This document shows, piece by piece, positions 2,023 through 62,894 of a stretch of 64,000 nt of DNA. Below the pieces are notes generated by a model. It made no database searches. It was given only the letters and a program-made list of their open reading frames with translations, and was not told where the DNA came from. Position 1 is the stretch's first letter. Every line of letters starts with the position of its first letter. The translations under genes were made by a program, and so were the position numbers. Location of the stretch: IMG/VR virus record IMGVR_UViG_3300030041_000009, positions 186,001-250,000 of that record; one strand, 5' to 3'.

Positions 2023-2085
2023 AAATTAATATATAATAATCATTAACAAAGTATTACAATTAAAAATTAATATTAATATACACTA

Positions 2086-2295
2086 ATGAAAGTTAGAATA
2101 TTAGAGTTATCACAAATAACTAAAGAAATCGTGACATCTAAATTATCTGAAAAAAATTTAGATTTGGATATGATAGATGAATATCTTGATATCTTATCTG
2201 CTATAAATAATAATCAGAGTGTATATAATATATCAACCACTGAAGGTGATTATATATTAATAATAACAGATAATCAATATAAAAAATTATCATAA
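2086..2295 (+). CDS. hypothetical protein
   Basis: ORF downstream of TAATATATA motif at 2027. Confidence 0.6.
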   Translation: MKVRILELSQITKEIVTSKLSEKNLDLDMIDEYLDILSAINNNQSVYNISTTEGDYILIITDNQYKKLS

Positions 2296-2304
2296 ACTAT
2301 TTAT

Positions 2305-2811
2305 ATGAAATATTTAAAAACGTTTGAAAAACAGAAAGAGAGAGAAATTACTTTATATAAGAATAAAGATTTTAATATTACTATAAATAACAGTAACGGA
2401 AATATGACTTATGGTACTAATTATCGGTCATGCTCTCCAATTTATGGTATTATTGAACAAATAATAGAAAAATCTGAATGCTTAAATGATCCTGAATTAA
2501 GAAAAATTATAATAACAGAAAAAGAGAGGGAATCAGCTATGCAATCAATGAATCCAAAATATTCAGTTAATAGAATTAAATATCATACATCACCAATTAA
2601 TGGATTTATAGGAGGTCCATCAAAAATTGAGATTAGGAAAATGCCAGATAACGTATACACTGAATTAACTGAAATATATTCACCTATAATAGAAAATATT
2701 ATTAAAAAATCTAAAACAATGGGTGATATAATTGATGAATTCAAAATTTTATATGATGTTATAACTGAAAATTTACCTCTTCATTTAGCATCTTCAAACT
2801 TTAACTTATAA
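2305..2811 (+). CDS. MKYLK/NFNL tagged protein
   Basis: MKYLKTFE...SSNFNL. Confidence 0.85.
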   Translation: MKYLKTFEKQKEREITLYKNKDFNITINNSNGNMTYGTNYRSCSPIYGIIEQIIEKSECLNDPELRKIIITEKERESAMQSMNPKYSVNRIKYHTSPINGFIGGPSKIEIRKMPDNVYTELTEIYSPIIENIIKKSKTMGDIIDEFKILYDVITENLPLHLASSNFNL

Positions 2812-2843
2812 AAAAGAATCAATTTAATTGATGCTTTTTTTAA

Positions 2844-3534: not shown

Positions 3535-3747
3535 TTAAAATATTTTTAATTTTTTTAATTTCATTTTTCTAATTTGATTTTCATCATAAAAATACTCATA
3601 TAACTTTGAATTTTTATCTAACTTAAAATGTATCCATGAGTTACTATCAATGATCATGTTTATAGTATTATCTCTACCTAATTCACTTTCATAATATTCA
3701 CCAAATATAAAATATGATAAATATGTCTTTTTACATAGATATTTCAT
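3535..3747 (-). CDS. MKYLCKK family small protein with RKxKL tail
   Basis: MKYLCKK...YEYF...IRKMKLKKL; TATCTTTG promoter box at 3762-3769. Confidence 0.8.
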   Translation of the reverse strand: MKYLCKKTYLSYFIFGEYYESELGRDNTINMIIDSNSWIHFKLDKNSKLYEYFYDENQIRKMKLKKLKIF

Positions 3748-3910
3748 ATTAATCTTTTTTACAAAGATACAATAAATTTTTAAAAATATGACTTTTTTAT
3801 AAATTATTATTATAAATATTATTACGATGTAAAATATATTAACAAATTCATATTAAATATATAAACAAAATGTTGAAAATATACTAAATAGATAAAAATA
3901 ATTAACATGA

Positions 3911-5410: not shown

Positions 5411-5620
5411 TTATTTGAATTCTTGTAATTTTGCTAGCTTTTTTCTTCTAATTTCTGGCATTGTTTCAAAATAGTCATGAATATTTCCTGTTTTAATTTC
5501 AGGAAAGTCAAAAAACATATGTTGATTTATTATTATAAAACCTTCATAATCATAGTTCTCACTATAATAATATTTTCCTACAATAAAATCTGGATATGAT
5601 TTTTTACATAGATATTTCAT
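5411..5620 (-). CDS. MKYLCKK family protein with RKxKL tail
   Basis: MKYLCKK...IRRKKLAKL. Confidence 0.8.
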   Translation of the reverse strand: MKYLCKKSYPDFIVGKYYYSENYDYEGFIIINQHMFFDFPEIKTGNIHDYFETMPEIRRKKLAKLQEFK

Positions 5621-5858
5621 ATAACTTTTTTAATTTAAGTTTTCGTAGTTCTTGAATATTACTAAAATATTCATATAATTTTGGATCTATTATAGTGTTA
5701 TTATCTAAAATAAATTTAGTGCTATTAATTAAAATATATTTATAATTATAGTTAATATTTCTATATGACATATTATCAGAATGAATATTATTATCAGAAT
5801 AATAATACTTTCCTACAATAAAATTTTCATTATATGCTTTTTTACATAGATATTTCAT
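5604..5858 (-). CDS. MKYLCKK family protein with RKxKL tail
   Basis: Near-identical paralog of 5842-6078. Confidence 0.8.
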   Translation of the reverse strand: MKYLCKKAYNENFIVGKYYYSDNNIHSDNMSYRNINYNYKYILINSTKFILDNNTIIDPKLYEYFSNIQELRKLKLKKLYEISM

Positions 5859-6078
5859 CTAATTTTTTTAATTTAAGTTTTCGTAGTTCTTGAATATTAC
5901 TAAAATATTCATATAATTTTGGATCTATTCTAGTGTCATCATCATCTAAAATAAATTTAGTGCTATTAATTAAAATATATTTATAATTATAGTTAATATT
6001 TCTATATGATATATTATCAGAATAATAATATTCTCCTACAATAAAATCAATATAATATTTTTTACATAGATATCTCAT
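5842..6078 (-). CDS. MRYLCKK family protein with RKxKL tail
   Basis: Ends ELRKLKLKKL; promoter box at 6097-6104. Confidence 0.8.
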   Translation of the reverse strand: MRYLCKKYYIDFIVGEYYYSDNISYRNINYNYKYILINSTKFILDDDDTRIDPKLYEYFSNIQELRKLKLKKLDEISM

Positions 6079-6111
6079 AAATTATCTTATTTGAAACAAA
6101 GATACAATAAA

Positions 6112-6527: not shown

Positions 6528-6679
6528 AATTTTATATTTTTACTTTATATAAATATTAGATTGATATGTTTTATATTTAATAATATTTAACTACAATATA
6601 ATGGTAATAATTGTTATATATTTTTATATATCAGATTTTTGTAGTATCTTTGTGTATCAATAATTTAAAACATAAACAT

Positions 6680-7450
6680 ATGAAACTAATTGGATTTGCA
6701 AATAAATTTTATACTCTTTGGAGTTATTCAGAAGAACCTTTGTATAGAACAATTAACACTGAATCATATCAATATGGTATTAAACAGAATTATAATTATA
6801 TAAAAAATATTTCTTTTGATTTAGATAAAGTAAAAGAACTTTACCCTGACGTGAAAATTGATGAAGAATTAAAAGGAAAAAGTCAAAGTTGGTCAAAAGA
6901 GCCAAAATTTGAATATCCAGATAAATATTTTCATTTTGGTAAATATGAAAGTCAACTTATTAGTGAATGTAAAGATCAATCTTACTTGATATGGTATTTT
7001 GAAACTGGTGTTTATGGTGAACGTTATGAAATAGTTAAAAATAGATTAATTGAATTAGGTTGTTATTTTTATAATGATATATTATTTACATCAAAAGAAT
7101 TACTTGATCAAAATATTGAACATGAAAAAAAAGAATTTGATAATAAAAAAATAATTGCAGAAACTTATGAAAAATATAAAATTTCTGGTATTTTTTCACA
7201 TAATTTTTATCATTCTTTAAATAGTGAAGGAAATTATAGAGACAATTCATTTGAATTCAGATTCAATGAATATTCTCAACAATCTTATTCTGGTTATGAT
7301 TATGGATTACCATTAATGAATGGTAAATCAAAAAGAATAAAAAATAAAGTTCTCGAAATGGAAGTTATTACAGAAGAAGATAAAACTTTTGGAGATAAAT
7401 ATTTTAGAGTTTTAAGCCTTAAATCAGTAAAAAATATAGAAAATGACTAA
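6680..7450 (+). CDS. hypothetical protein (probable start MKLIGF at 6680)
   Basis: TATCTTTG promoter box at 6645-6652 lies inside the longer called ORF, favouring the ATG at 6680. Confidence 0.7.
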   Translation: MKLIGFANKFYTLWSYSEEPLYRTINTESYQYGIKQNYNYIKNISFDLDKVKELYPDVKIDEELKGKSQSWSKEPKFEYPDKYFHFGKYESQLISECKDQSYLIWYFETGVYGERYEIVKNRLIELGCYFYNDILFTSKELLDQNIEHEKKEFDNKKIIAETYEKYKISGIFSHNFYHSLNSEGNYRDNSFEFRFNEYSQQSYSGYDYGLPLMNGKSKRIKNKVLEMEVITEEDKTFGDKYFRVLSLKSVKNIEND

Positions 7451-8249
7451 TCAAGAATTGATACATGTATTTGAAGACACCAAATCACATAGTTCAGAAA
7501 TGCTAAATTCAGAAACTACATTACATTTATTTGACGAACGATTAATGTCAGATATTAGGATTCCTTGTTATGAAAATATACAGGTTATAAATTCTGATAG
7601 TGTATCTGCAGTTACAGAATATAGTAAATTAGGTAAAACTTGCGTTCTTAATATGGCATCATATAAACATCCAGGTGGCGGAGTTGCAAGAGGATCAAAA
7701 GCACAAGAAGAATGCTTATTTAGATGCTCAAATTTAACTCATGTTATTAATACTGATAACTATCCATTAGGAGACGATAAAGCGTTATATACAAAGAATG
7801 CTGTGTTTTTCAAAGATGTAAATTATAATTATATAAATGAAGTTGAGTCAGATGTTGTAACTATTGCAGCATTAAATCTTAATAATGTAGAAGTTGATTT
7901 TAATGATTATTCTGATACAATTACAAAAGATAATATATCATCAATTAATATTAATTCTGAAAAAATAACGAAATGGGATTATGAAGAACTCACCAAAGAA
8001 AAAATAAGATTAATACTATCTCTTGCTATTAAAAATGATGTAGATATTATAATTTTAGGTTCATTTGGATGTGGAGTATTCAAAAATGATCCTGAAGAAA
8101 TGGCTAAAATGTTCAAACATTTATTAGTAAATGAAGGATATTCTAAATATTTTGAAAAAGTTATATTTGCCATTATCAATGATAGAAACTCAGTAGGTAA
8201 TAATTATGAAATTTTCAAAAATGTTTTTAGTAATTACTATTTAATTTAA
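7443..8249 (+). CDS. TIGR02452/DUF2263-like microbial PARG (macro-domain ADP-ribose glycohydrolase)
   Basis: VLNMAS..PGGG..GSKAQEECLFRCSNL signature; ILGSFGCGVFKNDP. Confidence 0.88.
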   Translation: MTNQELIHVFEDTKSHSSEMLNSETTLHLFDERLMSDIRIPCYENIQVINSDSVSAVTEYSKLGKTCVLNMASYKHPGGGVARGSKAQEECLFRCSNLTHVINTDNYPLGDDKALYTKNAVFFKDVNYNYINEVESDVVTIAALNLNNVEVDFNDYSDTITKDNISSININSEKITKWDYEELTKEKIRLILSLAIKNDVDIIILGSFGCGVFKNDPEEMAKMFKHLLVNEGYSKYFEKVIFAIINDRNSVGNNYEIFKNVFSNYYLI

Positions 8250-8253
8250 TAAA

Positions 8254-9012
8254 ATGAAAAACGCGTTAAGTTTATTACGGTCAAAAAAATTAACTGATAC
8301 TATTAATATGTTATATAAAGATGGTGATTTAGATATAATTTTACCAGAATTATGTAATTTACATACAACTACTAATGGTCATAAAAATAATTATTACCAT
8401 ACATTAGGCGTACTTAATAACGTGATTGAATATGATAATGATAACTTAAAAATGAAAATTGTTGCAGTATTACATGATATTGGTAAAATTTCTGTTAGAT
8501 CTAAAAATGATGATGGAAATTGGACATTTCATGATCATGAAAATGTAGGTGCAAAAATGGTAAAAAAAATATTAAAAAGATTTAATATAACTAATAAGAA
8601 AACTATTGATTATGTTTATAGAATGGTCAAATATCATGGTAGAGTAAAGATGCATAGGGATGTAACAGAATCAGCTATAAGAAGGTTAGATTTAGAAGTT
8701 GGACATGATATAGTATTAGAGTTAATTGAGTTCTGTAAGTGTGATATAACCACTAAATATGATGATAAAAGACAACGTATTATATCAGGATTGGATGAAA
8801 TAAAAAATAGAATATTGGAAGTTCGTAAGAAAGATAATGAATCTAAATGGAGATCACCAATAACAGGAACTATTATTATGGGAATGTTAAATATTACTAC
8901 TGGTAGAATGGTTGGTGATATAAAGAAAGTAACTGATGAAAAAATAAAATCAGGAGAATGGACTGAAGAAGATGCCATCAATTATATTAAAACATTTAAA
9001 AATGAAAACTAA
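8254..9012 (+). CDS. HD-domain phosphohydrolase resembling the C-terminal half of CCA-adding enzymes
   Basis: ILPEL, HKNNYYHTL, AVLHDIGK, WTFHDHENVGA, VTESAIRRL, CDITT, SPITG. Confidence 0.85.
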   Translation: MKNALSLLRSKKLTDTINMLYKDGDLDIILPELCNLHTTTNGHKNNYYHTLGVLNNVIEYDNDNLKMKIVAVLHDIGKISVRSKNDDGNWTFHDHENVGAKMVKKILKRFNITNKKTIDYVYRMVKYHGRVKMHRDVTESAIRRLDLEVGHDIVLELIEFCKCDITTKYDDKRQRIISGLDEIKNRILEVRKKDNESKWRSPITGTIIMGMLNITTGRMVGDIKKVTDEKIKSGEWTEEDAINYIKTFKNEN

Positions 9013-11151: not shown

Positions 11152-11538
11152 TTAATTAATTTCACATATTTTTAATTCTGAATTTACTTTTTCAACAAAA
11201 ATAATTATTTTTTCAACAACTTTTTCCATTGATTTTACTGTACATTTACGGAATTTAGAATTTAATCTTTCTCTTCTTGAAGAACCTTTTTGATGTAATG
11301 AACATTCAAATATTTCTACTTCACCAGATTGCTCAATATTCATTCTTAAATAGTTTGAGTTTTGGATATAACCATAATGCCAATTTTCTTTTTTATCAAA
11401 AGATAATGTCAATATAATAGTATCATTTCCCATGCAAGCATTTGATACTTTAACATATTCAACTTTATCAGTTAATTTATTACTTAAAAATTCAATTGCA
11501 TCTTTTTGTGATAAATTTTCAATATTAAATATTCTCAT
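11152..11538 (-). CDS. hypothetical protein
   Basis: 128-aa ORF behind a full TTTG-N20-TACTTTTG promoter (11572-11603). Confidence 0.7.
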   Translation of the reverse strand: MRIFNIENLSQKDAIEFLSNKLTDKVEYVKVSNACMGNDTIILTLSFDKKENWHYGYIQNSNYLRMNIEQSGEVEIFECSLHQKGSSRRERLNSKFRKCTVKSMEKVVEKIIIFVEKVNSELKICEIN

Positions 11539-11797
11539 AATTATATGATTTTAAATGATTAATTTGTACTACAAAAGTACAACTAATTATTTATTATATC
11601 AAATAAATATCATCTACTTAACATATTTTAATTTTTTTTCATATTCTATTGCATCTTTATCATAATAAAATATTTTACCATCTTCTGTTTCAAACGTATC
11701 TTTGGATATAGATGTTATTGTTTGAATTGTACCATTAATTGGATCTTTAATTATCGCAATAATTTTTTCAGCTTCAGCTTTAATTTTTTTCATATTA

Positions 11798-12121
11798 TTA
11801 TTCTTTTATAATATTACCTAGATTATCTAATTTTGTTTTTCTTACATATTGAACACATTCTTCATAATATCGTTTACAAGCGTTATTGTAATATTTTTCA
11901 AAATTATATTGACCTTTAATATTTGCTTCTTTTACAAGTAATGGTAAACAATCACTACAATAATATCCAAATAAAGTACTAAGTTTAGTATCAGATCCAA
12001 GAAAAACTGAAAACTCTTGATTGTTTTTTTTACATTTATTACATAATGATGATCCAACTGAATTACAAACTATAACAGTAGAGTATAATTTATAATATTG
12101 ATTTCTATCTGGCTTATTCAT
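11798..12121 (-). CDS. Zn-finger-like protein with RKxKL tail
   Basis: CNKC/CSDC; ends YVRKTKLDNL. Confidence 0.7.
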   Translation of the reverse strand: MNKPDRNQYYKLYSTVIVCNSVGSSLCNKCKKNNQEFSVFLGSDTKLSTLFGYYCSDCLPLLVKEANIKGQYNFEKYYNNACKRYYEECVQYVRKTKLDNLGNIIKE

Positions 12122-12408
12122 TTTAATAATTTTAGTTTTTTCTTTCTTAAAAAAGAATTAATATTTTTATCTAAAATTTCTTTAGTTATAAGAATTTGAC
12201 GTTTTCCTTGAGGAAAATCATAATCATTTATCCAAAATTCAAATGTTATGCCATCAGAATCAATATCAGTGTGAGTTATTCTAGAAGTATGTAAAAAATT
12301 ATTAGATTTTTCTAATAATTCTGTAGCAAGTTCTAAATAATTTTCTGTTATAGAATCTGCTTTGATTATTAATTTATCTCTTTTAGCAAATGTTTCATCG
12401 TAATTCAT
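12118..12408 (-). CDS. RKxKL-tail protein
   Basis: Ends FLRKKKLKLLK; probable start MNYDET. Confidence 0.7.
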   Translation of the reverse strand: MNYDETFAKRDKLIIKADSITENYLELATELLEKSNNFLHTSRITHTDIDSDGITFEFWINDYDFPQGKRQILITKEILDKNINSFLRKKKLKLLK

Positions 12409-12740
12409 TAGATTTCTTCTTTTAACCAAGTTATAAAATCTATCTCATTTGAAAATACAAAATTCGAATCTTCATCATATGGGTCATCACACATCACACT
12501 TGAACCAGAGATATTTTTTTCTACTTTTATATCATCTGTTGTGAAATAAATTTTTATTTGTGTAGTTTCTCCTTCTTCATAATCATTCCATCCATATGTA
12601 GCTTCAATAACATTATCATAACTAACATCATATTCTAATATTGGTCCAGTTTCACTACCATTATGATAATAATCTGAATTTACTTTGTCTTCTTTATCAA
12701 ATAAAGAAATAACATTTAACATTACATCTGTTACATTCAT
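12408..12740 (-). CDS. acidic hypothetical protein (probable start MNVTD)
   Basis: Promoter box TATCTTTG at 12763-12770. Confidence 0.65.
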   Translation of the reverse strand: MNVTDVMLNVISLFDKEDKVNSDYYHNGSETGPILEYDVSYDNVIEATYGWNDYEEGETTQIKIYFTTDDIKVEKNISGSSVMCDDPYDEDSNFVFSNEIDFITWLKEEI

Positions 12741-12854
12741 AATATTTATATTATTTAGAATACAAAGATAATAAATATAATTCAATGATTATTATTATTA
12801 ATATAAAATATTCTTATTTTTATTTTTTAATAACTTAATTTAATATATAGTTAC

Positions 12855-13298
12855 ATGAAATATTTAAAAACATTTGAAAATAGGTTTACTAACGTATTTA
12901 AATCTCATGATTTAGATATGTGGAATTCAGCAGTAGAAAATGATTTAATACGAATGGGTATACGAATGGGTTATAATGCCCTGATGCAATCCGCTTATGA
13001 TGGTAATCTTAAAAGATTTATATATTTATTACCTGATTATATTGATAAATTAAATGACATATTAAAATATCAAACAGTTTTATTTTTTGTTATAACAGGT
13101 GAAGGAGATATATATGAAAAAAAGAAAATGATTCAATTATTATTAGATAACGGAATTGATTATAATATAAAATATAAAGGTGAAACATTTTATGATTTAA
13201 TTACAGATGATAAATTGAAAAAATGGCTTGATAAAAAATATCCAGAAATAGTTAAAGAACTTAAACTTAATAAAAATACTGATAAATTTAACATATGA
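12855..13298 (+). CDS. MKYLK/KFNI tagged ankyrin-like protein
   Basis: NALMQSAYDGN, LLLDNGIDYN; TAATATATA at 12841. Confidence 0.8.
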   Translation: MKYLKTFENRFTNVFKSHDLDMWNSAVENDLIRMGIRMGYNALMQSAYDGNLKRFIYLLPDYIDKLNDILKYQTVLFFVITGEGDIYEKKKMIQLLLDNGIDYNIKYKGETFYDLITDDKLKKWLDKKYPEIVKELKLNKNTDKFNI

Positions 13299-13618
13299 AA
13301 TATTTAAAAACATTTGAAAGATTAAATAGAGATATAAAAAAAGGAGATTATGCTATAATTAACTTTGAACCTAGAAACCAAGGGATATCAGTTTTTTTTA
13401 AAAATAATATTTGTAAAATTATTGATATAAGAGGAACCAATCCTATTTGGATTAAGTTTGGATATGAATATGTACCAGATGAACTAATTGAATGTTTTGA
13501 TAAAAAAGGAAAATATTATGTTTATCATATAGAGTTAAATTCAAGTGATGTTGAAAAATATGCTAGAACTAAAGAAGAATTAGAATTAGAATTACAAGCA
13601 AATAAATTTAACTTATGA
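13295..13618 (+). CDS. MKYLK/KFNL tagged protein, GDY subfamily
   Basis: MKYLKTFE..KGDYAI...ANKFNL. Confidence 0.85.
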   Translation: MKYLKTFERLNRDIKKGDYAIINFEPRNQGISVFFKNNICKIIDIRGTNPIWIKFGYEYVPDELIECFDKKGKYYVYHIELNSSDVEKYARTKEELELELQANKFNL

Positions 13619-14187
13619 AATATATAAAACAATTTGAATTAACAAAATTTTATGATGAAAAAGATATATTTAAATATATTTATGAAATTGATTCACCTAA
13701 AATTAAAGAATTGATATCTAAAATCCCAAATATAAATCTTAATATTAAAAATAGTAATGGAGATACTCCTTTAATAATCACTATAAGGTATGGGTTATAT
13801 CAAATATTTAAAATTTTAATTGATTCAGGAGCTGATGTTAATACTACTGATAATTTTGGAAATACTCCATTGATATTAGTAGTACGAAATAAAAAAGAAG
13901 AAATGATTCAAGATTTAATAACAGCAGGAGCAGATATAAATAAAATAAATAATAATAGTGAAACTGCATTAATTGTGAATTCTAATTATAATTATAGAGA
14001 TAAAAAAGCATTAAAAATAACTAAGTTTTTAATTGAAAATGGAGCAGATTGGAATATAACTGATGATATTGACCATACATTTATAGATTATTTACCTCCT
14101 GCATATAGAAAAGAAATTATAGAAGAATATCCAGAAGAATATTCAAATTATTTAATGGTTAAAAATACAAATAAATTTAATATATGA
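13615..14187 (+). CDS. MKYIK/KFNI tagged ankyrin-repeat protein
   Basis: GDTPLI, GADVN, GNTPLI, GADIN, GADWN. Confidence 0.9.
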   Translation: MKYIKQFELTKFYDEKDIFKYIYEIDSPKIKELISKIPNINLNIKNSNGDTPLIITIRYGLYQIFKILIDSGADVNTTDNFGNTPLILVVRNKKEEMIQDLITAGADINKINNNSETALIVNSNYNYRDKKALKITKFLIENGADWNITDDIDHTFIDYLPPAYRKEIIEEYPEEYSNYLMVKNTNKFNI

Positions 14188-14633
14188 AATATATAAAAAC
14201 ATTTGAACATATAATGGATAATGTATTGACATTAAATGATAAAGGATTATTTATAATATCAAATATTCCAGATACAACAACAGAATTATATTGCTATAAT
14301 AATAATTTAAAAGAATTGCCAACATTACCAGAGACATTAGAGATATTATCTTGTTTTAATAATGTTTTGCGTGAGTTACCTACTTTACCGCACTCAATAA
14401 AAAAAATATTTTGCTATTCTAATAATTTAAAAGAATTGCCGACATTACCATATTCATTAAAGACATTAAATTGTAGTAATAATAATTTATCTGAGTTACC
14501 ATTATTACCAGAGACATTAGAAATATTAGTATGTGAAGGTAATAACCTACCTTATAACAATTTAGATGAATATAACAAATGGTTAGAGATAAATCATCCT
14601 GATATATTTAATGCTAAAAAATTTAATATATAG
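14184..14633 (+). CDS. MKYIK/KFNI tagged leucine-rich repeat protein
   Basis: 20-aa LxxLxCxNNxLxELPxLP repeats. Confidence 0.9.
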   Translation: MKYIKTFEHIMDNVLTLNDKGLFIISNIPDTTTELYCYNNNLKELPTLPETLEILSCFNNVLRELPTLPHSIKKIFCYSNNLKELPTLPYSLKTLNCSNNNLSELPLLPETLEILVCEGNNLPYNNLDEYNKWLEINHPDIFNAKKFNI

Positions 14634-14637
14634 TAAT

Positions 14638-14949
14638 ATGAAAATACTAAAATTTAATGAGCATCAATTTACAATGTTAGATGATGATGTTATATTAGCA
14701 GGTAGATCTAAATATCCAGTAGGCACTAAAATCAAATTTAAAGAGGATGATGAGTATTTAACTGGTACTCTTACTCATCCATTTGGTTCCTGTAATGGTG
14801 ATGTTGGAGTGTATCTAGATCAAAAAGGAAAGTACGTGGATGATAGATTATGTTTAAAAAACAGAGAATATATAGTTATTGACGACGAAGTTGAAGAATT
14901 TATGAAAGATTATAAATTAAAACAAGATGCAAACAAATTCAATTTATAA
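14638..14949 (+). CDS. KFNL tagged protein (probable start MKILKFNE)
   Basis: TAATATATA at 14624-14632; ends ANKFNL. Confidence 0.8.
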   Translation: MKILKFNEHQFTMLDDDVILAGRSKYPVGTKIKFKEDDEYLTGTLTHPFGSCNGDVGVYLDQKGKYVDDRLCLKNREYIVIDDEVEEFMKDYKLKQDANKFNL

Positions 14950-14995
14950 GTGAAATAACTTATAAAGTGTATTTATAAGTGAAATAGCTTATAAA
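14943..14995. repeat. two tandem 24-bp palindromes
   Basis: TTTATAAG-TGAAATA(A/G)-CTTATAAA at 14943 and 14972. Confidence 0.7.
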
Positions 14996-14996
14996 T

Positions 14997-15035
14997 AAAA
15001 AATCCTATCTAATTTTTCAATTAGATAGGATTTTT
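14997..15035. terminator. bidirectional intrinsic terminator
   Basis: AAAATCCTATCTAATT..AATTAGATAGGATTTT. Confidence 0.8.
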
Positions 15036-15044
15036 ATTTTATAT

Positions 15045-15920
15045 TGCTTGAGAATACAGCATTATAGAGAAGAACTTTAGAAACTATTATTTTTTCTGCT
15101 TCTTTTCCACCAATCTTTTGAATTGGTACTCCTCCAATGACGGTCAATTAGATTCACCACTCCTTTTGTTGTTAATTACTCTCTTAATAATCATTACTCA
15201 TCTAGAATGCCTTCCAGATTAAATCTTGCGGATTTAGAGAACTTTCTTAAAAATCATGTTGGACTTGGGGTCTTTCACGGCTACGACGAATTGCTTCTCA
15301 TAACTAGTAGTCACCTATCACTAACAACAGTCGAACTCTTTTCCTTTATTTGTTTATTTTAATTTGCATTAAATTTGCAGTTAAAGTTTGTTTTGTGGAT
15401 GATGAAAGTAGTGGTTCGACAACCAGCTTCTCAATCTTTTGAACTGAGCTATACTAAACTACTCTCTGAGATATCCCTACCTCCATATTTTAAGTCAACT
15501 AAGATACTCTCGTAACACTTGGTAATGTTAAGGTAACCTTAATTACAGCACCACCTGTACATTGTATTACAATCTAATTTACCTTTCGGTTTTAAGTCAA
15601 CTTTTATATTGGATAACGCAATTACACAACTGGAAATCGTATTTCTTGCAATAATCCTTCAGGTTATTCTTATTGATGTTCCCATCTCACTCAGACTACC
15701 CACATAGCCTTTGCATTAAACCACTTTCTCTACAGTGTTACCCTCGATAATCAAGGTTTAATGATATCCTGATTGTCTGCTCAAGTATTATTGTTTACAA
15801 TTAATTTTATTTCCGAAAAAATAAAATCAACTGCACATTTAATACCGCAAGTTATAGAAACAACTATAACTCACTTTATACTACTTTCGTAGTTTATTTA
15901 TGACTACAGACAGCCAAATA
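15045..15920 (-). ncRNA. candidate large structured ncRNA (~870 nt)
   Basis: No ORF; markedly higher GC than flanks; many hairpins, including GNRA-capped CTAC-GAAA-GTAG, ACC-GAAA-GGT and AAATC(C)-GCAA-GATTT on the minus strand; boxA-like motif upstream and terminator downstream. Confidence 0.7.
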
Positions 15921-15947
15921 TTTTCAATTTTACAAAGAACGCTTTAA

Positions 15948-16087
15948 AAAAACAACAGAATTAATATAGAAGAATTTTAAATAAGACTTAACAAAAGCGA
16001 TAGAAAGACATTAACTTTCTGCTCATTATTGATCCACTTTCCTGGAATTTCAACCTACATAATTTTATATTAATTCATGTTGTTTTA
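15948..16087 (-). ncRNA. candidate rod-shaped small RNA
   Basis: Ends pair: AAAACAACAGAATTAATATA / TATATTAATTCATGTTGTTTT. Confidence 0.45.
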
Positions 16088-16257
16088 AAAGTTCAAGTAC
16101 TTTTACTTGAAAATGTCACAAATCTATTTCAGTCCTTTGTTCTTCACAGAACTTTATCATTGGAACAATAAACATTTGGTTATGTTCATTATATCTACTC
16201 TTGTAATATAAATCCTTGAATTTTTATTACTTTTGCAATATTTACTTTTGTAATATT

Positions 16258-20467: not shown

Positions 20468-20468
20468 A

Positions 20469-49625: not shown

Positions 49626-50753
49626 TTATTTTAACCAATAATTACTTTTTTTAATTCCTTTAACATTCATCATTTCTAAAAATTCATTTGGAAATTCTGT
49701 ACCCCATGCAAATGCAACATCACAATGAGAATCTTCAGAAAAATTAGTTATACTATAAGATGTAGAAAATAATAAAGGATCTTCTCTTCTTGCTAATGCT
49801 TGTTGGACTTCAAGGTTTAATGTTTTAATTTGTTCAGCTTGCTGAATAGCTAGTTGTTGCTGACGAATTTGTTCTTTTGATATTTTTTCAAGTTCTGACT
49901 GAATTCTACAAATATTTTGTTCTATTCCTTTTACTTGCTCTTTTAAAACTTTTGTTGAATTTTCAAGTGCATCTACTCTATTACCAAGATTTACCATAGT
50001 TTCATACATACTTCTGAATAATGGTAAATTCATACCAACATTCATACTAACCATTGATAATGAACTAGGAAAATAAACATCATAGTATTTTTGAGATTTT
50101 ACATGTTTTTCAAAATCATAAAATCCAATTGGACATAAAATGTAAAAATATCTTTCTGAATTTGCAAATTTATAATTGTTAATTGCAGATTCAATATCTA
50201 CAGATTTTCTTTTTGGATCACAAGTTAAAATTGAATTTTTTGCTAATTCTAATGGAATTATCATAAATCCAAATGTTTCTGCTATTTCTACGATAGAACT
50301 AAGTTTTGAATTTAATCTTGAATTTAGATATTTATTATAATTTTCATCTGTTTTAATTAAAATTTGATTATATTTTTCACTTGATGATCCATTATATCTA
50401 CAACCAGATTTAATTTCTTCAACTTCTAAATCATATTTAATTAAATTATCTGGTACTTTAATATTAAAGTTTTTTAATTCTCTTAATATACTATTATAAT
50501 TATTTACTTTATCCGTGATTTCATATCCTAAATGTTTGAAAATTTCTTGTTTAGTAGAAAAATTAGTTTTAGAATTATCAGAATAATAGTGACTATGGGT
50601 ATCAATAATTTTAACTTTTTCTAATACTCTCAATGTTAATATAAAATCCTTTATGTCAGATTCTATTACATTAAGTTTATTTAATAATCCAAGTTTATCA
50701 ACTTTTTTTGTTGATGATACTGTTGTTGTTGGTGTTACATTTAATAAATTCAT
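49626..50753 (-). CDS. coiled-coil hypothetical protein
   Basis: 375 aa; heptad Q/E/K-rich segment; promoter at 50806-50836. Confidence 0.75.
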   Translation of the reverse strand: MNLLNVTPTTTVSSTKKVDKLGLLNKLNVIESDIKDFILTLRVLEKVKIIDTHSHYYSDNSKTNFSTKQEIFKHLGYEITDKVNNYNSILRELKNFNIKVPDNLIKYDLEVEEIKSGCRYNGSSSEKYNQILIKTDENYNKYLNSRLNSKLSSIVEIAETFGFMIIPLELAKNSILTCDPKRKSVDIESAINNYKFANSERYFYILCPIGFYDFEKHVKSQKYYDVYFPSSLSMVSMNVGMNLPLFRSMYETMVNLGNRVDALENSTKVLKEQVKGIEQNICRIQSELEKISKEQIRQQQLAIQQAEQIKTLNLEVQQALARREDPLLFSTSYSITNFSEDSHCDVAFAWGTEFPNEFLEMMNVKGIKKSNYWLK

Positions 50754-51162
50754 ATTATTATTATTTTAATTAAACATGAAAACAATTTTTTATTGATTTC
50801 AAATACAAAGATAATAAAAAAATTCAAATACACAAATTATTCTCAACTATTTTAAATATTAATTTTATTACAATAATGATAATATTTTGATAATTGTTTT
50901 AACTTATCTTTTCTAATATCAATTTTAGCATTATATTCTATTGCATTTTTATATTTATTTTCATATTCATTTAATGATTTCATAATATTAACATAATTAT
51001 TACAATCATTAACCGATTTTATATGTACTGTTTTAATATTATTTTCAATTGTAATATGCTCCTTTTCAAATTCAGTTAACTTATTTTTATAATAGTTAAT
51101 CTCGGATAATATAATATTTACTTTAATCATAACTTTTTTATTTTTATACCATATAATATAGA

Positions 51163-56650: not shown

Positions 56651-57202
56651 TCATTCTTTATTTAATTCAATAAATGATTTAATCGTATTTCTGTTATTAT
56701 AGACTGATTTTGGAACCATGTTTTTTAGCTCAGGAGAATTGCTCAGTATAGCTTTTCTAACTTCGGTAGCAGATACACCATCTTCAACAGTTCCTCTTGC
56801 TAATAGCACCAGAGATACATTATTTTTGAACATAAATCCTGGAAACCATTTAGTGATGATTTCAAATCCATCTGAATAATACATAGTGAAACAACTATCT
56901 TTAATTTGATCTACTATTTTAGTATAAAGATAAAAACCCCATTCAATAGAATTATCACTTTCTGAAGTTAAATCATCTAATGGTATTATTAAACATTTAT
57001 CAATCAACTTAGCTTCTTTTAATGCATCTTTTAGCATTTCAATTCTAATGCTAACTGGAATTGGATTTCTTGAGTCAACTTTATCCGCACTTCCAACTAA
57101 AAATACTACATTTTCATTTTCATCATATGCCTTTTTAATTAATGCCATATGACCATTATGTACTGGCTGAACTCTTGCTAATATTACTCCGAATTTATTC
57201 AT
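56651..57202 (-). CDS. NMN adenylyltransferase-like (NadM) nucleotidyltransferase
   Basis: ARVQPVHNGH, VGSA...RNP...R, VSATEVR. Confidence 0.82.
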   Translation of the reverse strand: MNKFGVILARVQPVHNGHMALIKKAYDENENVVFLVGSADKVDSRNPIPVSIRIEMLKDALKEAKLIDKCLIIPLDDLTSESDNSIEWGFYLYTKIVDQIKDSCFTMYYSDGFEIITKWFPGFMFKNNVSLVLLARGTVEDGVSATEVRKAILSNSPELKNMVPKSVYNNRNTIKSFIELNKE

Positions 57203-57419
57203 ATATTTTTAATTTTTTTAATTTTTTTTTTCTAATTTCTGATACTGTTATTAAATTTTTTGGTTCAAAATAATACATTGGAAGTTCATATAAAGAAATA
57301 ATGGTGAAATTATCGCTAAAATAATCTTTGATTGTAAAAATATTATATCTATTATCTGTTATATATTTATGATGTTCATAAAAATAATCAGTAAATAAAA
57401 CTTTATCTCCTATTTTCAT
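57195..57419 (-). CDS. KIGD family protein with RKxKL tail
   Basis: MKIGDKV...IRKKKLKKL. Confidence 0.8.
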   Translation of the reverse strand: MKIGDKVLFTDYFYEHHKYITDNRYNIFTIKDYFSDNFTIISLYELPMYYFEPKNLITVSEIRKKKLKKLKIYE

Positions 57420-57820: not shown

Positions 57821-58237
57821 TCAAAGAACTATTTGTTTAATTATATTTAATAGTATAATATTTTAAAAAAGTTTATTTTATTTACACTTTTTTATATTTT
57901 TATTTAATTTTTTTGTAACGGAATCTTTACCTTTTGGTGCTTTATATTTTATAAGAAATCTTTTAACTGATTTTAAAGAATAATAATTACTAGTATATTC
58001 ATATTTATAAAAATTGAAGTCATCTTCTTTTTCCCATCTTAATAATTCACAATTCCACCAATAACCATTTATATTAATTGAAAATGGTCTTTTGAATGAA
58101 TATTTAATTCTCGCCCCTTTTTGCTTAGTATATGTTATTTTCATGAGTATTTTAAATAATTATTATAATGATGACAAAGATATAAAATATAAATGATTTA
58201 GATATTAATATATTATTTATTTTATTGATTTTTAACT

Positions 58238-60286
58238 TTAAATATTAAAATCTTTATATAATTTTTTAAGTTTTTCTTTTCTACATTCTTTAATAGATAA
58301 ATATTTATTAATTCTATGATAATTTTCTGCATCTTCATTGATTGATATTAAACCATTTTCATAATCATAATCATTCACTATCATATCATTATAATTTGAT
58401 GAATATGATATAGTTTTTATATAATCACAGAATGTGAAAATTTTGTTAGTTGATATTTCTAATAACTTATCTCCTGGTTTGAACATAATTTTAATAGTTT
58501 TTGTTTTCTATATTCTTTTAATGTTATAAATCTATTTTCATGATATTCAAAATCATTTTCTAATATAATATAATTAAAATGATCTGATTGATATGTAAAG
58601 CATAGTTTAATTATATAAATATGGTTTAATAATAATTTTCTCATACTATTATCATCTAAATAAGAATTATCAATACAAATTACTTTATCTCCTGGTTTTA
58701 ACATAATTTTAATATTTTTTGTTTTCTATATTCTTTTAATGATATAAATCTATTAGAATTAAATTCAAAATTATATTTTTCTAATATCATACCAATATAA
58801 TTATTTTCTGTATCATAACTAAAAATATCTTCAATTATATAAATATTATTTAATTGTAATAGATTTATATCATATAAATAAGAATTATCAATGCAAACTA
58901 CTCTATCTCTTATCTTGAACATTCTTCTAATTTTTTTAGTTTTTCTTTTCTCATTAAAATTTCTATATTTTTACCAGTTTTTTTATAATAAATATCTTTT
59001 AATTTTTCAATATTAATTATGAAAATATACAGGTTCGAATTCATTTTTTTATCTATGAAAAAAACATTAGTAGATGATTCAATGCATATTATATAATTAT
59101 TATCAATTATATAGTTAGTATCAAAACATTCATGGGTTTTTCTAAGATTTAGATTTTCTATATAATTAACAAGACTTGATTCACTTATCATTTTTATTTA
59201 ATTTTAATAATTTTAATTTACGATATTCTTTTAATAGCATAAAACAATTATAATTATATCCATATTTTATATCTTTGAAACAAATAATAAAATTTTCACT
59301 AAATAATTTTTTATATCTTATATCTTTATATTCTGTAACTTCTAATATTGTATTAGGTAAATTGTATTTTTTTCTATATTGTTGATCAATGCAAACTACT
59401 TTATCTCCTGGTTTGAACATAATTCTATTTGTTTGAGTTTTTGTTTTCTATATTCTTTTAATAATATAAATCTCTCTGAATAAAATGTCTCATTACAACA
59501 TTCTTTTATTTCAACTCTTGATCTACCAAAACTTGATCTATCAAAAACTGAAAAATCTATATTAATTGTATAAATATTATATTTAATTAGGTTTACATTA
59601 TAATTATTATTATTATATTTTTTAACATCAATACAAACTACTTTATCTCCTACTTTGAACATATTTCTAATAATTTTTGTTTTCTATATTCTTTTAATGA
59701 TATGAATCTGTGTGAAAAATACATACGTTTACATTCATATAATACAACTCTATCTGTATTGCTACCTGAAATTTCTGCAATTCTATTTATTGTATAAATA
59801 TTATATTTAATCATTTCTATTATAGATTTATCATTATAAAAATATTTATCATTAATACACACTACTTTATCTCCTGGTTTGAACATAATTCTATTTGTTT
59901 GAGTTTTTCTTTTCTATATTCTTTTAATAATATAAATCTAGTATTATAATATAAACTATTTTCATGATATTCTAATATTATTCTATTATTGGTATATTCA
60001 TGTAACTCTTTTACAATATAAATATTATATTTAATTAGATTTATATTTGGATCACAATTATTTTCATCATTTATGCAAACTACTCTATCTCCTGGTTTAA
60101 ACATATTTCTTTAAGTTTTTGTTTTCTATAATATTTAATAAAATCAAAATCTGTTAATATAATATCACATTCATTGGCTGCATAATATGGATATATAAAA
60201 ACATCATTTATGTTTATATAATCATTTACTTGATATTGAATATGAATTTTATAATTACAATTAAGATAATTTAAATTATCCATCAT
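58238..60286 (-). CDS. tandem array of nine small RKxKL-tail genes, mostly MFKPGDKVVCI family
   Basis: ORFs 58238, 58459, 58698, 58910, 59181, 59396, 59650, 59862, 60080; overlapping junctions ATGTTCAAACCAGGAGATA. Confidence 0.85.
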
Positions 60287-60403
60287 TTTACGACTAAAAA
60301 CAACAGCAACTCCATAATCATTAAAATTTTTAGATATTTCTTTATATAATAATTCGTAAAAATCCTAGTAGTTTTTAATATATAATTATCAAATATTTCA
60401 ACA

Positions 60404-62854
60404 TTAAATTTTACTATTTTCATTATAATAATTATTTATTTTTTCTATTTTTAATTTTCTATTATATTGTTTAAAATCTATTTTATTATTAGATAAATAA
60501 AAATCCCCTTCTTGTAAATCTGTGTTTATATAAAGATAACAGTCATATAATATTCCGATATAAGGTTTTGATGATTTGTAAGAAATAAGATGAAATTTAT
60601 CGGAATATAAAATAAAATCAAAACAATCCTTACCTACATAAATATGAGGATTATTTTTATATATCATTATATAATTATTTATATAATTTTTAATAATATT
60701 ATATATTCTATTTGAATCTATTTCTTCAGATTGATAATTTATTGAAAAATCTATATTATAATATTCTACTATCATAATTTTGATAATTTTTGAAGTTTAA
60801 TCATTCTAAAATATTTTTTAATATATTTATCATCATTAATCATCATATTAAATTGATGTAAAGTTATTCCTTTAATATCTTCTATATCTTGATTTATAAA
60901 ATGATACCATCCATTAAACACATCTATTTTATTATCAAGCACATCAAATCTATATTGAAAAATTCTAAAAAAATCTTCTAATTCCAATTCATCTACATGT
61001 TTCATTTCAACTAGCATTATACCTATTAAACTACGAATAGAAGCAAAATAAACATCTCTATTTTTATACTCTATTAATTTATTTATTATTACATCAAATA
61101 AATGAGATATAGAATTATATTTATCATTAGGAATACAGACTTCAATAAACAAATTATGTTTAGTAAATAATTCTTTATTATATAACTTTACGTTTATCAT
61201 AATATTATTTTAGATAATTTAAATTTTCTTATATATTTTACGTATTCTAAAATATAAATATAATAATTAAATTGTTTATATTTATTATCAGCTATTAAAT
61301 ATGTAATATCAATATTAATTTCATTATTGATATATGATATTTTATATCGTCAATAGTATATTTTTTATTAAGAATAAATTCTTCATCATGATTCAATATA
61401 TAAATCATCATATCCTTTTTTGTTATTTTCATCTATTTTCATTTTCTTAAATTTTATTCTTCTAGTTTCTCTAATATAATCTCTAATATTAACATTTACT
61501 GTAATACTTGTACATAATTCAGAATCAACTTTAATTAAATATCGTACAGTTATACATAATGTATTTCTAATTATATTATATGATATACGATCTATAACAT
61601 ATCCTTCTGATATATAAAAACGTTCAACGTTATTTATAACATAAATCAATAATTCAAAATTAGATATTTTCATTTAATTTTTCTAATTTAATTTTTCTAA
61701 GATAATTATTAAATGAATTAAATGATATTTCTTTTTCATCTGAAAACATAGTATCTACATTTATAATATAATATGACAATTTAACTTTTATGCTAAATTC
61801 ATAAGTTGTTAATTTCATATATGAATAAAATTCATATTTTTCATTATCTTTTTTAATAATATAATCAAAAAATAATGGTAATTCATTTTTTCTTTCTATC
61901 CATTTATTTATCCAATCATTCATATTTTGATAATTTTTCAATTTTTGTTTTTCTTATAAAATTATTATATTCATTAGCAGATAATGTTATATTTGAAAAA
62001 AAAACTTGTCTTGATATATTACTATCATAGTATATTATTCTAAAATTAGTATATTTATCAAAAGATGTACCCATTTTATAAGATTTAAGATTATAATTTT
62101 TATTATCTTTTTTTATATAGTTATCAATACAATAAAATGTTGAATTATGTTTTTTTACCCAAGCTTGCATATATTTGATAATTTTTTTAGTTTTTCTTTT
62201 CTATAATCTTTCAATGATAAAAATTGTTCTGAATAATAATCATCAACAATTATAGCTTCTTTTATTCTAATTACAGTAGTAACTCCTCCTATTACAATAT
62301 TATTACGGCAATCAAATATATGTAAGATTGTTAATTCTTTATTTGATGGTAAATCTATATTGTATCATAAAGATTTAATAAAATAAATTTTGTCTCCAAC
62401 GTTAAGCATCTATCATTATTTTTTCAAGTTTTTTCTTTCTAATATATGTTCGTAATTTCTGAAATGAATTATCAGGATTATTATCAATTATGTGAGTTAA
62501 TTCTAATAAAGTTAAACCTTTTATTGAATATATTTCATCACTTATAGATATAGTATTTGTGCCAATTATTATACCAATCATTCTCAACATATCAGTAAAA
62601 TCTTTACATTCTTTTAATTGACATATTTCATACATACGAATTTCTTTAACGAACCATAATAGTCCACCTAAATTTATATTATTTATTTTCATTGATATAG
62701 TAATATCAAGCATCTTATTAAAATCTAATATTTTAATAGAATCATTATTATTATAAAAAATATTATAATCAGTATTTAATGATATATATGAACTACTCAT
62801 TACATAATTTACAATATTTACAATCATTTTTATAAGTTTTAAAATAAGATACAA
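60404..62854 (-). CDS. array of diverse RKxK(L/I)-tail genes, some disrupted
   Basis: ORFs 60404, 60772, 61386, 61660, 61916, 62402 with tails such as NRKLKIEKI, LRKIKLEKL, IRKKKLEKI. Confidence 0.75.
62155..62409 (-). pseudogene. VGDK/RKxKL paralog with in-frame TGA
   Basis: MLNVGDKIYFIKSL*YNID...DYRKEKLKKL; TGA at 62365-62367. Confidence 0.65.
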
Positions 62855-62894
62855 ATATAACTATTAAATTTTGAATGTGCAAATTTTTATACAT

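Follow-up and report, generated by a model that had tools for sequence, protein, structure and literature searches.

In Bacteroidota, promoters of the primary sigma factor, sigma-A, have their transcription start 4-5 nt downstream of the -7 box. In T4, late promoters consist of TATAAATA near -10 with no -35 element; they are read by gp55 together with gp33 and the gp45 clamp, and transcription starts about 6 nt after the box. Poxvirus late promoters are composed of a T-run, a spacer and a TAAAT(G) initiator that overlaps the ATG. The sigma-A consensus of Bacteroidetes has been reported as -33 TTTG and -7 TAnnTTTG (TAHHTTTG), with a weak -33 element in Flavobacterium johnsoniae (PMC6847099). 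The late promoters of jumbo phages of the phiKZ/AR9 type have short AT-rich motifs (PMC5312081, PMC9209446) and are read by phage multisubunit RNA polymerases.

The window analyzed here, a stretch of 64,000 nucleotides, is part of a 214.5-kb fragment of an uncultured huge phage from peat (22% GC, about 30% complete). With its T4-like family B polymerase, it matches the 'group 2' jumbo phages (T4-like family B polymerase, no own RNA polymerase detected; PMC7824862). Comparison of the DNA polymerase identified 634-735-kb 'uncultured phage' genomes as the nearest GenBank relatives; one of these, LR756501 (complete, 735 kb, 32% GC), served as an independent genome for motif tests. Metagenomes are the only source of the largest known phage genomes (634-735 kb) and their relatives, most of whose genes lack an assigned function, and the predicted hosts of the largest relatives are Bacteroidetes (PMC7162821). 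The sole RNA run with related sequence yielded a few short contigs. Judging from promoter-like sequences, this huge phage probably has a Bacteroidota host and runs a two-class transcription programme, in which host-type class B promoters would act early and phage-specific class A promoters later.

Motif discovery by expectation-maximisation on 148 upstream regions recovered both the A and the B motif. The B-type promoter, (TTTG-N19-20-)TA(T/C)(C/T)TTTG(T/C)A, includes TATCTTTG(T/C)A, a form of the TAnnTTTG element, and had 29 intergenic matches of at least 10 bits versus 8.0 +/- 2.6 in dinucleotide shuffles. The word TATCTTTG was seen 18 times in the intergenic DNA of this genome (1.6 expected) and 23 times in that of LR756501 (3.1 expected), and the 'TC' form accounts for 18 of 67 intergenic boxes versus 21 of 400 coding boxes. 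Both the consensus fit and this intergenic excess of TATCTTTG bear out a preliminary description of the window, in which the TAnnTTTG boxes were considered host-type promoters. Like promoters of Bacteroidota sigma-A (sigma-A Bfr), the phage boxes fit TAHHTTTG. A subset has TTTG 19-20 nt upstream, and this candidate -33 element is weak, as in Flavobacterium johnsoniae; the phage version, TATCTTTG(T/C)A, is unusually uniform. These host-type boxes support the assignment of the phage to a Bacteroidota host.

All five boxes listed previously (3762, 6097, 12763, 44411 and 62852) were found again on the minus strand, where each immediately precedes a unit with genes of the RKxKL family. Four of them read TATCTTTG and the one at 62852 reads TATATTTG; together with eight more boxes in the window, all five fit TAnnTTTG with no G at n. 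B boxes stand 11-52 nt before start codons. The box TATCTTTGTA at 3760-3769 (-; 14.0 bits) heads 3535-3747 (-), which encodes MKYLCKK...RKMKLKKL, while TATCTTTGTT at 6095-6104 (-) heads three RKxKL genes at 5411-6078 (-) and TATCTTTGTA at 12761-12770 (-) heads a minus-strand unit containing 12118-12429 (-). A full promoter, TTTG-N20-TATCTTTGTA, was found at 44409-44442 (-) at the head of a long minus-strand unit from 44399, and TTTG-N20-TATATTTG at 62852-62883 (-) heads the unit from 62854 to 58238, which includes an 8-gene RKxKL array. A terminator hairpin and a tRNA immediately precede this last promoter. Further minus-strand boxes are TTTG-N19-TATCTTTGTA at 50804-50813, heading 49626-50753 (-) and downstream genes; TATCTTTGTC at 58173-58182, heading 57878-58144 (-) and a unit with the RKxKL gene 57195-57419 (-); TATCTTTGTA at 36737-36746, heading 36500-36703 (-), and again at 22397-22406, heading 21869-22315 (-) back to back with the A box at 22458; and TTTG-N20-TACTTTTGTA at 11570-11601, heading 11152-11538 (-). 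On the plus strand, TATCTTTGTG at 6645-6654 heads a unit with PARG-like and HD genes (about 6680-9012). A TTTG 19-21 nt upstream accompanies the boxes at 44411, 62852, 50804 and 11570 and, overall, 16 of the 67 intergenic boxes. Of the five listed boxes, some of which had been described with TTTG 20 nt upstream, those at 44411 and 62852 have it at this distance; at 3762 and 6097 none occurs within 17-23 nt and there is just a TTG 22 nt upstream; at 12763, where TTTG was counted as absent, the box is inside a called ORF and outside the set of intergenic boxes.

The A-type motif reads, genome-wide, TTT(A/T)ATATATA followed by a 5-nt spacer and a conserved A(AA), and the exact 9-mer TAATATATA is one variant of it. 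The raw count of TAATATATA is not over-represented (18 observed versus 19.3 +/- 4.1 in shuffles); its position is non-random, with an ORF start 3-30 nt downstream in 7 of 18 copies versus 7.8% across all 512 A/T-only 9-mers (binomial p = 2.6e-4). In a genome-wide ranking of 510 A/T-only 9-mers by such placement, TTATATATA was first and TAATATATA second. The full motif had 38 intergenic matches of at least 10 bits versus 3.3 +/- 1.8 in dinucleotide shuffles, and plain word counts in intergenic DNA gave 13 copies of TTTTTTATATATA (0.37 expected) and 11 of TTTAATATATA (2.0 expected). Intergenic enrichment in the window alone, with a model trained outside it, was modest (9 versus 4.2 +/- 2.3). Because the genome has 22% GC and the motif consists of A and T alone and is almost a palindrome, its orientation calls and weak sites are uncertain. 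Roughly half of all units have neither motif.

In an alignment of 200 A sites, the box was directly preceded by a short T-run, and weak A-tracts were centred about 12 and 18 nt from its first base on the upstream side; no -35-like partner was found in this alignment. At leader-bearing sites, the frequency of A at +6/+7/+8 after the box is 0.89/0.84/0.76 in this genome and 0.88/0.91/0.82 in LR756501. The spacing between box and ATG is bimodal in both genomes: in LR756501, 25 sites are exactly 5 nt from the ATG and a broad peak covers 14-26 nt, with 9-12 nt almost empty. LR756502 has the same bimodal spacing, with the ATG 4-5 nt after the box at 6 sites. In this genome, seven scored sites and three further sites in the window have the ATG exactly 5 nt after the box, so that the A of the ATG is the conserved A at +6; such leaderless-type placement concerns a fifth of A sites. 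Moreover, an A box located 17-23 nt before the start codon is kept in orthologues of an 827-aa gene (38-80% protein identity), in which the flanks of the box diverge. Together, these sequence features indicate that the A box is a conserved promoter-like element of the phage lineage.

Within the window, all seven TAATATATA sites of the preliminary description are present. Those at 12841, 14624, 27981 and 33336 are each exactly 5 nt before an ATG, and the respective genes start with MKYLKTFE, MKILKFNE, MKVKKFKE and MKYLKLFE. The box TTTAATATATA(G) at 12839-12849 (+), with the ATG at 12855, heads the MKYIK/KFNL array 12855-14949 and has the TAATATATAG-N4-ATG geometry of the 25 LR756501 sites. The array-internal box at 14622-14632 (+; ATG at 14638) is formed by the codons F-N-I-stop with which the preceding gene ends (TTT AAT ATA TAG, 14622-14633), as had been claimed. 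The box TTTAATATATA at 27979-27989 (+) precedes a 72-aa gene at 27995, and TTTTTTTAATATATA at 33330-33344 (+; 12.0 bits) heads the array 33350-34693. At 19388, the box TTTTTTAATATATA (19383-19396, +), which scores 11.5 with the model trained outside the window, is followed after 7 nt by an ATG (19404; MKNIKSFD). Overlapping, near-palindromic boxes at 21186-21201, a 21186(-)/21193(+) pair, lie between the divergent MKYIK array 20469-21157 (-), whose ATG is 28 nt away, and the gene 21216-21815 (+), 14 nt away. A T variant, TTTTTTATATATAATA, at 22458-22473 (+; 12.5 bits) lies 22 nt before the ATG of a PPK2-HAD gene at 22496, which is followed by nine MKYIK/KFNL genes. The array 60-2811 has its head just beyond the window edge, where TTTTATATATAG is found 20 nt before the first ATG. 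The weakest of the listed sites is 2027 (2027-2035, +), a doubtful one of 5.8 bits without the T-run, 50 nt upstream of a non-family ORF.

In the independent genome LR756501, TAATATATA has 126 intergenic copies versus 5.9 expected, and an ORF follows 127 of 169 copies. About 170 ORFs are A-headed and about 470 lie in A units; A-headed ORFs are longer (median 247 aa versus 152 overall) and include the terminase large subunit, portal, baseplate wedge and two tail-fibre genes. Of the 14 large annotated ORFs of LR756501 whose units are B-type or motif-free, none is structural (Fisher p = 0.004). With structural genes A-headed and none among those 14 outside A units, 'late' is the best reading of the A box. 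In the present genome, an A-like box accompanies four of the five genes that resemble tail fibres; the short gap between g92873 and the fifth such gene, g92472, immediately downstream of it, shows no box. The box also precedes PPK2, a thymidylate synthase (thyA)/methyltransferase unit, homing endonucleases and a resolvase. The proposal that TAATATATA is a late promoter thus agrees with its conservation and its position before virion genes in LR756501, but the box precedes non-structural genes as well and may drive everything after the early phase.

The two tag families were found to sort by transcription unit (Mann-Whitney on score difference, p = 2e-6; Fisher p = 6e-4). Genome-wide, MKYIK/KFNL units are 16 A-type, 0 B-type and 7 unassigned, and RKxKL units are 5 B-type, 2 A-type and 10 unassigned, so that the previously noted correspondence of two families with two promoter types stands except for two RKxKL genes in A-type units. 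The largest MKYIK/KFNL array in the window (24164-27977, +) comprises nine genes with overlapping stop/start ATGA, and the largest RKxKL array (58238-60286, -; M.K.GDKV...YRKxKL) belongs to a 43-member blastp cluster. Several MKYIK/KFNL arrays are predicted to be co-transcribed with large virion-like genes.

From the observed motifs, their enrichment, orientation, spacing and conservation, the gene content and the family sorting, we infer promoter function, start point, early or late timing and reader. The uniform phage version of the host primary-sigma -33/-7 promoter would be recognized by unmodified host RNA polymerase as infection begins; class B heads long same-strand runs of small genes, the RKxKL family among them. 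Class A would follow later, with transcription starting most likely at the conserved A 6 nt after the box; sites with the ATG exactly 5 nt after the box would give leaderless mRNA and other sites a leader of about 9-22 nt. Virion and packaging genes, most other non-early genes and the MKYIK/KFNL arrays would be driven by class A.

It is very unlikely that the TATATA box instead acts after transcription or in translation, for example as an RNA processing site or as an AT-rich initiation enhancer for a host without Shine-Dalgarno sequences. While the box does lie near start codons (5-28 nt) and Bacteroidetes initiation regions are A-rich and unstructured instead of using a Shine-Dalgarno sequence (PMC6847099), a ribosome-positioning element should have a single fixed distance, not a bimodal one with a gap at 9-12 nt. 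The conserved A(AA) is also fixed 6 nt after the box whatever the distance to the ATG, many divergent gene pairs have A boxes at their heads, one in each direction, and most array-internal genes have no box. The link between MKYIK/KFNL genes and the box could also be a by-product of tandem duplication, with the box riding in the cassette without temporal meaning, since the junction of FN(I/L)-stop and MKY already resembles a box. The family members are clustered, the 14624 box is formed by the family's own C-terminal codons and array-internal junctions read TTTAAT(A/T)TATGAAATAT, one mismatch from the A box; nevertheless, this explanation is very unlikely, as many non-family genes here are box-headed, single-copy orthologues retain the box upstream, most array-internal family genes have no box of their own, and LR756501 has about 170 A-headed ORFs versus two ORFs with the tag patterns, neither A-headed.

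The A box could also be a genuine promoter that is not late, read throughout infection or in a middle phase by host polymerase that carries a sigma-70-family factor of either host or phage origin, in which case the families would differ in reader and not in timing. Sigma-70-family proteins are encoded by relatives, no separate third late motif was seen, and the box here precedes nucleotide-metabolism, methyltransferase, helicase-adjacent and homing-endonuclease genes. In LR756501, however, A units contain the terminase, portal, baseplate and fibre genes but not those for DNA polymerase, RNR, ligase, SbcC and PRPP synthase, and the largest, virion-like ORFs are A-headed; we consider a promoter without late timing unlikely.

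The preferred reading, a later phage-specific promoter, resembles T4 late promoters in that the A box is short, AT-only, without a -35 element and located before head, tail and packaging genes, with a predicted start about 6 nt after the box. It differs from them in its consensus, TTT(A/T)ATATATA in place of TATAAATA, and in that a fifth of sites are leaderless-type. TATAAATA was not enriched in LR756501 intergenic DNA (38 versus 23.4 expected), where the enriched word is T(A/T)ATATATA. The gp55-type PHROGs 234 and 12791 had no match at E <= 1 in five related records (G000-G004), nor did PHROG 234 in the complete 735-kb LR756501. The T4-like late promoter of the preliminary description is therefore retained as a functional analogy only, although a very divergent gp55 homologue is conceivable. 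Neither an RNA polymerase beta nor a T7-type polymerase was found in the five related records to which this search was confined. That no gp55-like sigma was detected in these records and LR756501, and no phage polymerase in the five records, points to another late-transcription factor, and the likeliest reader of the A box is host polymerase redirected by a phage factor. A short AT-rich late motif in a very large phage is also a feature of the phiKZ/AR9 type, from which the present phage differs in its consensus and in the lack of beta or T7-type polymerase genes in the five records. Poxvirus late promoters also combine a T-run with a downstream AT core and initiate at the start codon or beside it, as predicted here, but this is an analogy only, since virus, polymerase and host are all unrelated.

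By its sequence, the phage-specific TTT(A/T)ATATATA box is common to this phage and the largest known phages. The promoter pair would allow hundreds of genes without assigned function to be sorted, from sequence alone, into early and later classes, including the A-headed ORFs and A units of the 735-kb genome and both tagged families here, and it predicts a leaderless late mRNA class in a phylum without Shine-Dalgarno sequences. An unlikely extension is that the leaderless A-promoter subclass specifically expresses M-x-K-x-(F/Y)-x-x-(F/Y)-x-E-tagged proteins, that a new type of late factor, neither gp55-like nor a phage polymerase, reads TTT(A/T)ATATATA-N5-A, and that the flexible N-terminal tag serves in targeting or processing, for instance in capsid packaging like the T4 internal-protein leader. 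If the tag were a capsid-packaging signal, the virion would contain dozens of small, diversified SH3-like proteins. Tag-like N-termini are found in the MKYIK family here, and similar ones occur in LR756501 and LR756502.

Expectation-maximisation over 148 non-coding upstream regions of the 214,510-bp record (22.2% GC), whose positions 3980-67979, reverse-complemented, give the window, yielded two motifs. Motif A consists of a T-run, (A/T)TATATA and then A-rich sequence, while motif B reads (TTTG-N19-)TATCTTTGTA. Enrichment in intergenic DNA was strong for both, with 38 A and 29 B matches of at least 10 bits, compared to 3.3 +/- 1.8 and 8.0 +/- 2.6, respectively, expected from shuffles. Among single words, TTTTTTATATATA was found 13 times in intergenic DNA (0.37 expected), TTTAATATATA 11 times (2.0 expected) and TATCTTTG 18 times (1.6 expected); the coding count of TATCTTTG was 21 vs 20 expected. 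An A model trained outside the window recovered the same consensus, but its enrichment inside the window was modest. Trained in the same way, the B model shifted towards a T-rich pattern and was dropped, and plain word counts replaced it. As had been proposed in the preliminary description, the B box fits the Bacteroidetes sigma-A -7 consensus, TAnnTTTG/TAHHTTTG. In Flavobacterium johnsoniae, sigma-A promoters have a weak -33 element beside this -7 element (PMC6847099), and the phage B boxes likewise carry a weak -33 element. The 65 units lacking both A and B gave no sign of a third (middle) motif.

The preliminary description had named an exact 9-mer, TAATATATA, as a phage late promoter. Raw over-representation of this word within the window was rejected, as its count was at chance (18 vs 19.3 in shuffles), which is unsurprising because the genome has 22% GC. 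Its placement in the window is non-random, however; an ORF starts 3-30 nt after 7 of the 18 copies, compared to 7.8% over A/T-only 9-mers as a whole (p = 2.6e-4), and when 510 A/T-only words were ranked by ORF starts over the whole record, TTATATATA (31/80) and TAATATATA (20/63) were the top two. Going by the intergenic word counts, the 9-mer is the less common form that TTT(A/T)ATATATA takes in this genome. At every coordinate named, the sequence had the content described. The sites at window 12841, 14624, 27981 and 33336 are each exactly 5 nt before an ATG, the site at 19388 is 7 nt ahead of one, paired sites at 21186-21201 serve a divergent gene pair, and the box at 14622-14633 is spelled by F-N-I-stop codons; the site at 2027 is present but doubtful as a box. 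All five TAnnTTTG boxes (3762, 6097, 12763, 44411 and 62852) are real, four of them reading TATCTTTG, and those at 44411 and 62852 have a TTTG 20 nt upstream. The TAATATATA copy at window 16513 falls within a direct repeat and has no gene downstream. In some A-like boxes the T-run is at the same time the U-tract of a terminator hairpin lying upstream (genome 79770-79810; window 62890-62935, minus strand), and such a U-tract gave a false A-type match at window 62885-62900, beside a true B-type promoter.

The two tagged gene families sort with the two promoter types, as had been claimed (Mann-Whitney p = 2e-6; Fisher p = 6e-4). The RKxKL family is a blastp cluster of 43 proteins with the N-terminus M.K.GDK..C and the C-terminus YRKxKLxKL, and MK(Y/H)(I/L)KxFE or KFN(L/I) termini were found on 71 ORFs. 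When units were assigned by the nearest upstream gap of at least 25 nt, 16 of 23 MKYIK/KFNL units were A-type and none B-type, with seven assigned to neither, while the 17 RKxKL units comprised two A-type, five B-type and ten assigned to neither. Most cases left by this rule resolve in the same direction when the gaps are read by eye. The box at 33336 had fallen within a mis-called 5' extension, the array at window 60-2811 has TTTTATATATAG 20 nt ahead of its first ATG, just beyond the window edge, and the RKxKL arrays at 58238-62170 would be read from the promoter at 62852. Against this trend, two RKxKL-like genes (genome 79495 and 87754) lie in A-headed units, and the unit at genome 135-137 kb is mixed. 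Several MKYIK genes share transcription units with very large genes, one of them of 1061 aa, for which the language model gives only a weak lead to a tail-tip family. One MKYIK/KFNL protein (window 1044-1355, plus strand; 19 paralogues in alignment A2) was predicted with high confidence as an SH3/Tudor-like small barrel (pLDDT 89.5), in which the KFNL tail ends the C-terminal helix and the MKYIK head, modelled with low confidence, is probably flexible; structural matches were weak and generic. A G-D-x-V strand motif is common to the cores of both families, but a common origin was rejected, as profile comparison was not significant (probability 2%).

The box-to-ATG distance is bimodal in this genome, in the complete 735-kb relative LR756501 and in the 642-kb relative LR756502. 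A sharp class with the box 5 nt before the ATG comprises 25 sites in LR756501 and seven scored plus three further window sites here, and six sites in LR756502 have the ATG 4-5 nt after the box; a broad class lies at about 14-28 nt, and 9-12 nt is almost empty in all three genomes. At leader-bearing sites, A is found at bases 6, 7 and 8 after the box with frequencies of 0.88, 0.91 and 0.82 in LR756501 and 0.89, 0.84 and 0.76 here, and the A of the ATG in the 5-nt class coincides with the conserved A at position +6. This A(AA), fixed at +6 whatever the ATG distance, looks like an initiating nucleotide; the 5-nt class would then yield leaderless mRNAs and the remaining sites leaders of about 9-22 nt. 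An alignment of 200 box sites contained no -35-like element. A metatranscriptome run with 5% of the words of window 19000-25000 yielded only a few contigs of 150-300 nt, none of them showing a transcription start. The N-termini of 5-nt-class genes in LR756501 and LR756502 resemble the MKYIK head (M-x-K-x-(F/Y)-x-x-(F/Y)), and therefore the head tag travels with the predicted leaderless promoter class. The tag could be either a protein signal for packaging or processing or a 5'-end constraint of leaderless mRNAs.

In IMG/VR the 214,510-bp record is entered as a linear viral fragment of about 30% completeness, and several peat metagenomes contain near-identical DNA. The record encodes phage replication functions (a family B DNA polymerase and helicases), RNA-repair enzymes, methyltransferases, homing endonucleases and virion parts, namely a collagen-like tail fibre, a 2152-aa tail-spike-like protein and a TIG-domain fibre; no match in it came from models of Gp23, Terminase_6N or sheath. 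The closest matches to its DNA polymerase were five "uncultured phage" records, led by LR756501/3 (735 kb) at 54.6% identity and followed by those of 642, 636 and 634 kb. Bacteroidetes are the predicted hosts for the largest phage genomes of Al-Shayeb et al. 2020 (PMC7162821). Ten members of a paralogous cluster lie at genome 145734-212544, outside the window, several of them surrounding the DNA polymerase gene (a 494-aa polymerase ORF is followed by a 533-aa member); members scanned against PHROGs match homing/HNH endonucleases, and one member is an 823-aa glycosyltransferase-like ORF instead.

The A box is conserved among relatives. A perfect A box precedes an 827-aa gene (genome 176114-178597), and orthologues on IMG/VR contigs, at 38-80% protein identity, retain it 17-23 nt before the start codon although the surrounding spacer has diverged; the divergent neighbours have their own box. 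The 827-aa product had no match in Pfam, PHROG or PDB and its AlphaFold model has a pLDDT of 43.6; a very high language-model score for a T4 neck protein is a lead only. In LR756501, examined whole (735 kb, 32% GC), 126 of the 169 TAATATATA copies are intergenic (5.9 expected), and intergenic counts of TTTAATATATA (78 vs 1.1 expected), TTTTATATATA (43 vs 1.1) and TATCTTTG (23 vs 3.1) were also raised, whereas TATAAATA of phage T4 was without enrichment (38 vs 23). A 41-kb sample of LR756502 contained 17 box copies compared to 4.4 expected, 16 of them followed by an ORF. Samples of LR756500 (462 kb) and Prevotella phage Lak-B1 showed no enrichment of the box, so Mahaphage-type genomes do not all share the motif; it is therefore confined to one sub-lineage of these huge phages.

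In LR756501, where 170 of 1015 ORFs have a box within 70 nt, A-headed ORFs have a median length of 247 aa (all ORFs, 152; B-headed ORFs, 136), and the nine largest of them span 1014-3487 aa. PHROGs annotated 9 of 20 A-headed ORFs of 497-901 aa, and five of the nine are virion or packaging genes (terminase large subunit, portal, baseplate wedge and two tail fibres). By comparison, 14 of 20 large ORFs in B or motif-free units were annotated and none was structural (Fisher p = 0.004); those in B units encode a protease, ABC transporter, peptidase, DNA ligase, PRPP synthase and efflux protein, and those in motif-free units RNR, glycosyltransferases, an elongation factor and SbcC. The LR756501 DNA polymerase is in a unit without either motif. 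In the record containing the window, four of five tail-fibre-like genes have an A-type box; the fifth, g92472, lies directly downstream of g92873, with no box in the short gap before it. A boxes also precede a PPK2-HAD gene, a thyA/methyltransferase unit, homing endonucleases and a resolvase. Since virion genes are A-headed and the box also precedes non-structural genes, we read class A, from gene content, as the probable phage-specific post-early class that includes late genes, and class B as the probable host-read early class. The PPK2 (polyphosphate kinase 2)-HAD fusion, with a HAD of the "Swiss Army Knife" RNA-repair type (window 22496-24145, plus strand), opens an A-headed unit in which nine MKYIK/KFNL genes come next.

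As to what reads the A box, searches of five related records detected neither a phage RNA polymerase (beta, T7-type) nor a gp55-type late sigma (gp55 PHROGs), and the latter was not detected in LR756501 either. Searches that included Sigma70_r2/r4 found sigma-70-family proteins in relatives, a 163-aa ECF-like one in a 501-kb relative (L034:1471-1962) and a 289-aa one in LR756501 (491201-492070, minus strand), but no such gene in the 214-kb fragment itself; these proteins were set aside as readers, as no evidence connects them with the box. In jumbo phages whose replication genes are T4-like, the host polymerase is usually redirected by small sigma-like factors (PMC7824862), and the favoured model is that the host polymerase would be redirected to the A box by an unrecognised phage factor. 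Both kinds of promoter are already known in principle, and no paper in the searched literature connects TAATATATA with these phages. As far as that literature shows, there is no earlier description of the TTT(A/T)ATATATA-N5-A consensus, its predicted leaderless subclass, its restriction to a single lineage among the largest phages or the absence of any recognisable reader. A third conserved element, TTATATCATGAT(C/T)TTGCATGA, has two copies here (genome 13208, i.e., window about 54760, minus strand, and genome 157412) and three in LR756501 (492143, 387710 and 200360), one of them immediately upstream of the 289-aa sigma-70-family gene; the element could serve as a further regulatory site.

Several other elements were noted. 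A full-length GOLLD RNA (Rfam RF02032; window 15045-15466, minus strand; 278.9 bits, E 1e-79) sits in an ORF-free 3.9-kb stretch (14950-18850). Direct-repeat arrays with units of about 93 nt and 107-113 nt occupy window 16233-18864, and the minus strand of several of the ~110-nt repeats carries a perfect host-type promoter, TTTG-N20-TAA(C/T)TTTG, pointing to a series of small RNA genes. A tRNA with the anticodon CTA (amber suppressor type; "Pyl" in ARAGORN) lies at window 62960-63031, minus strand; downstream of it come a terminator hairpin and, beyond that, the B-type promoter at 62852. Of the stop codons, TAG ends the fewest ORFs of the record (20 of 380); recoding was not assumed, and no alternative genetic code was used. 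At genome about 120.7-125.4 kb, a gene encoding a Cas3-like HD and DEAD-helicase protein (L007:686-2983, minus strand) adjoins at least 33 repeats with a 66-nt period (L007:3168-5400), a phage-borne CRISPR-like array, after which come genes of 234, 299 and 357 aa, all three without annotation and headed by a B-type box.
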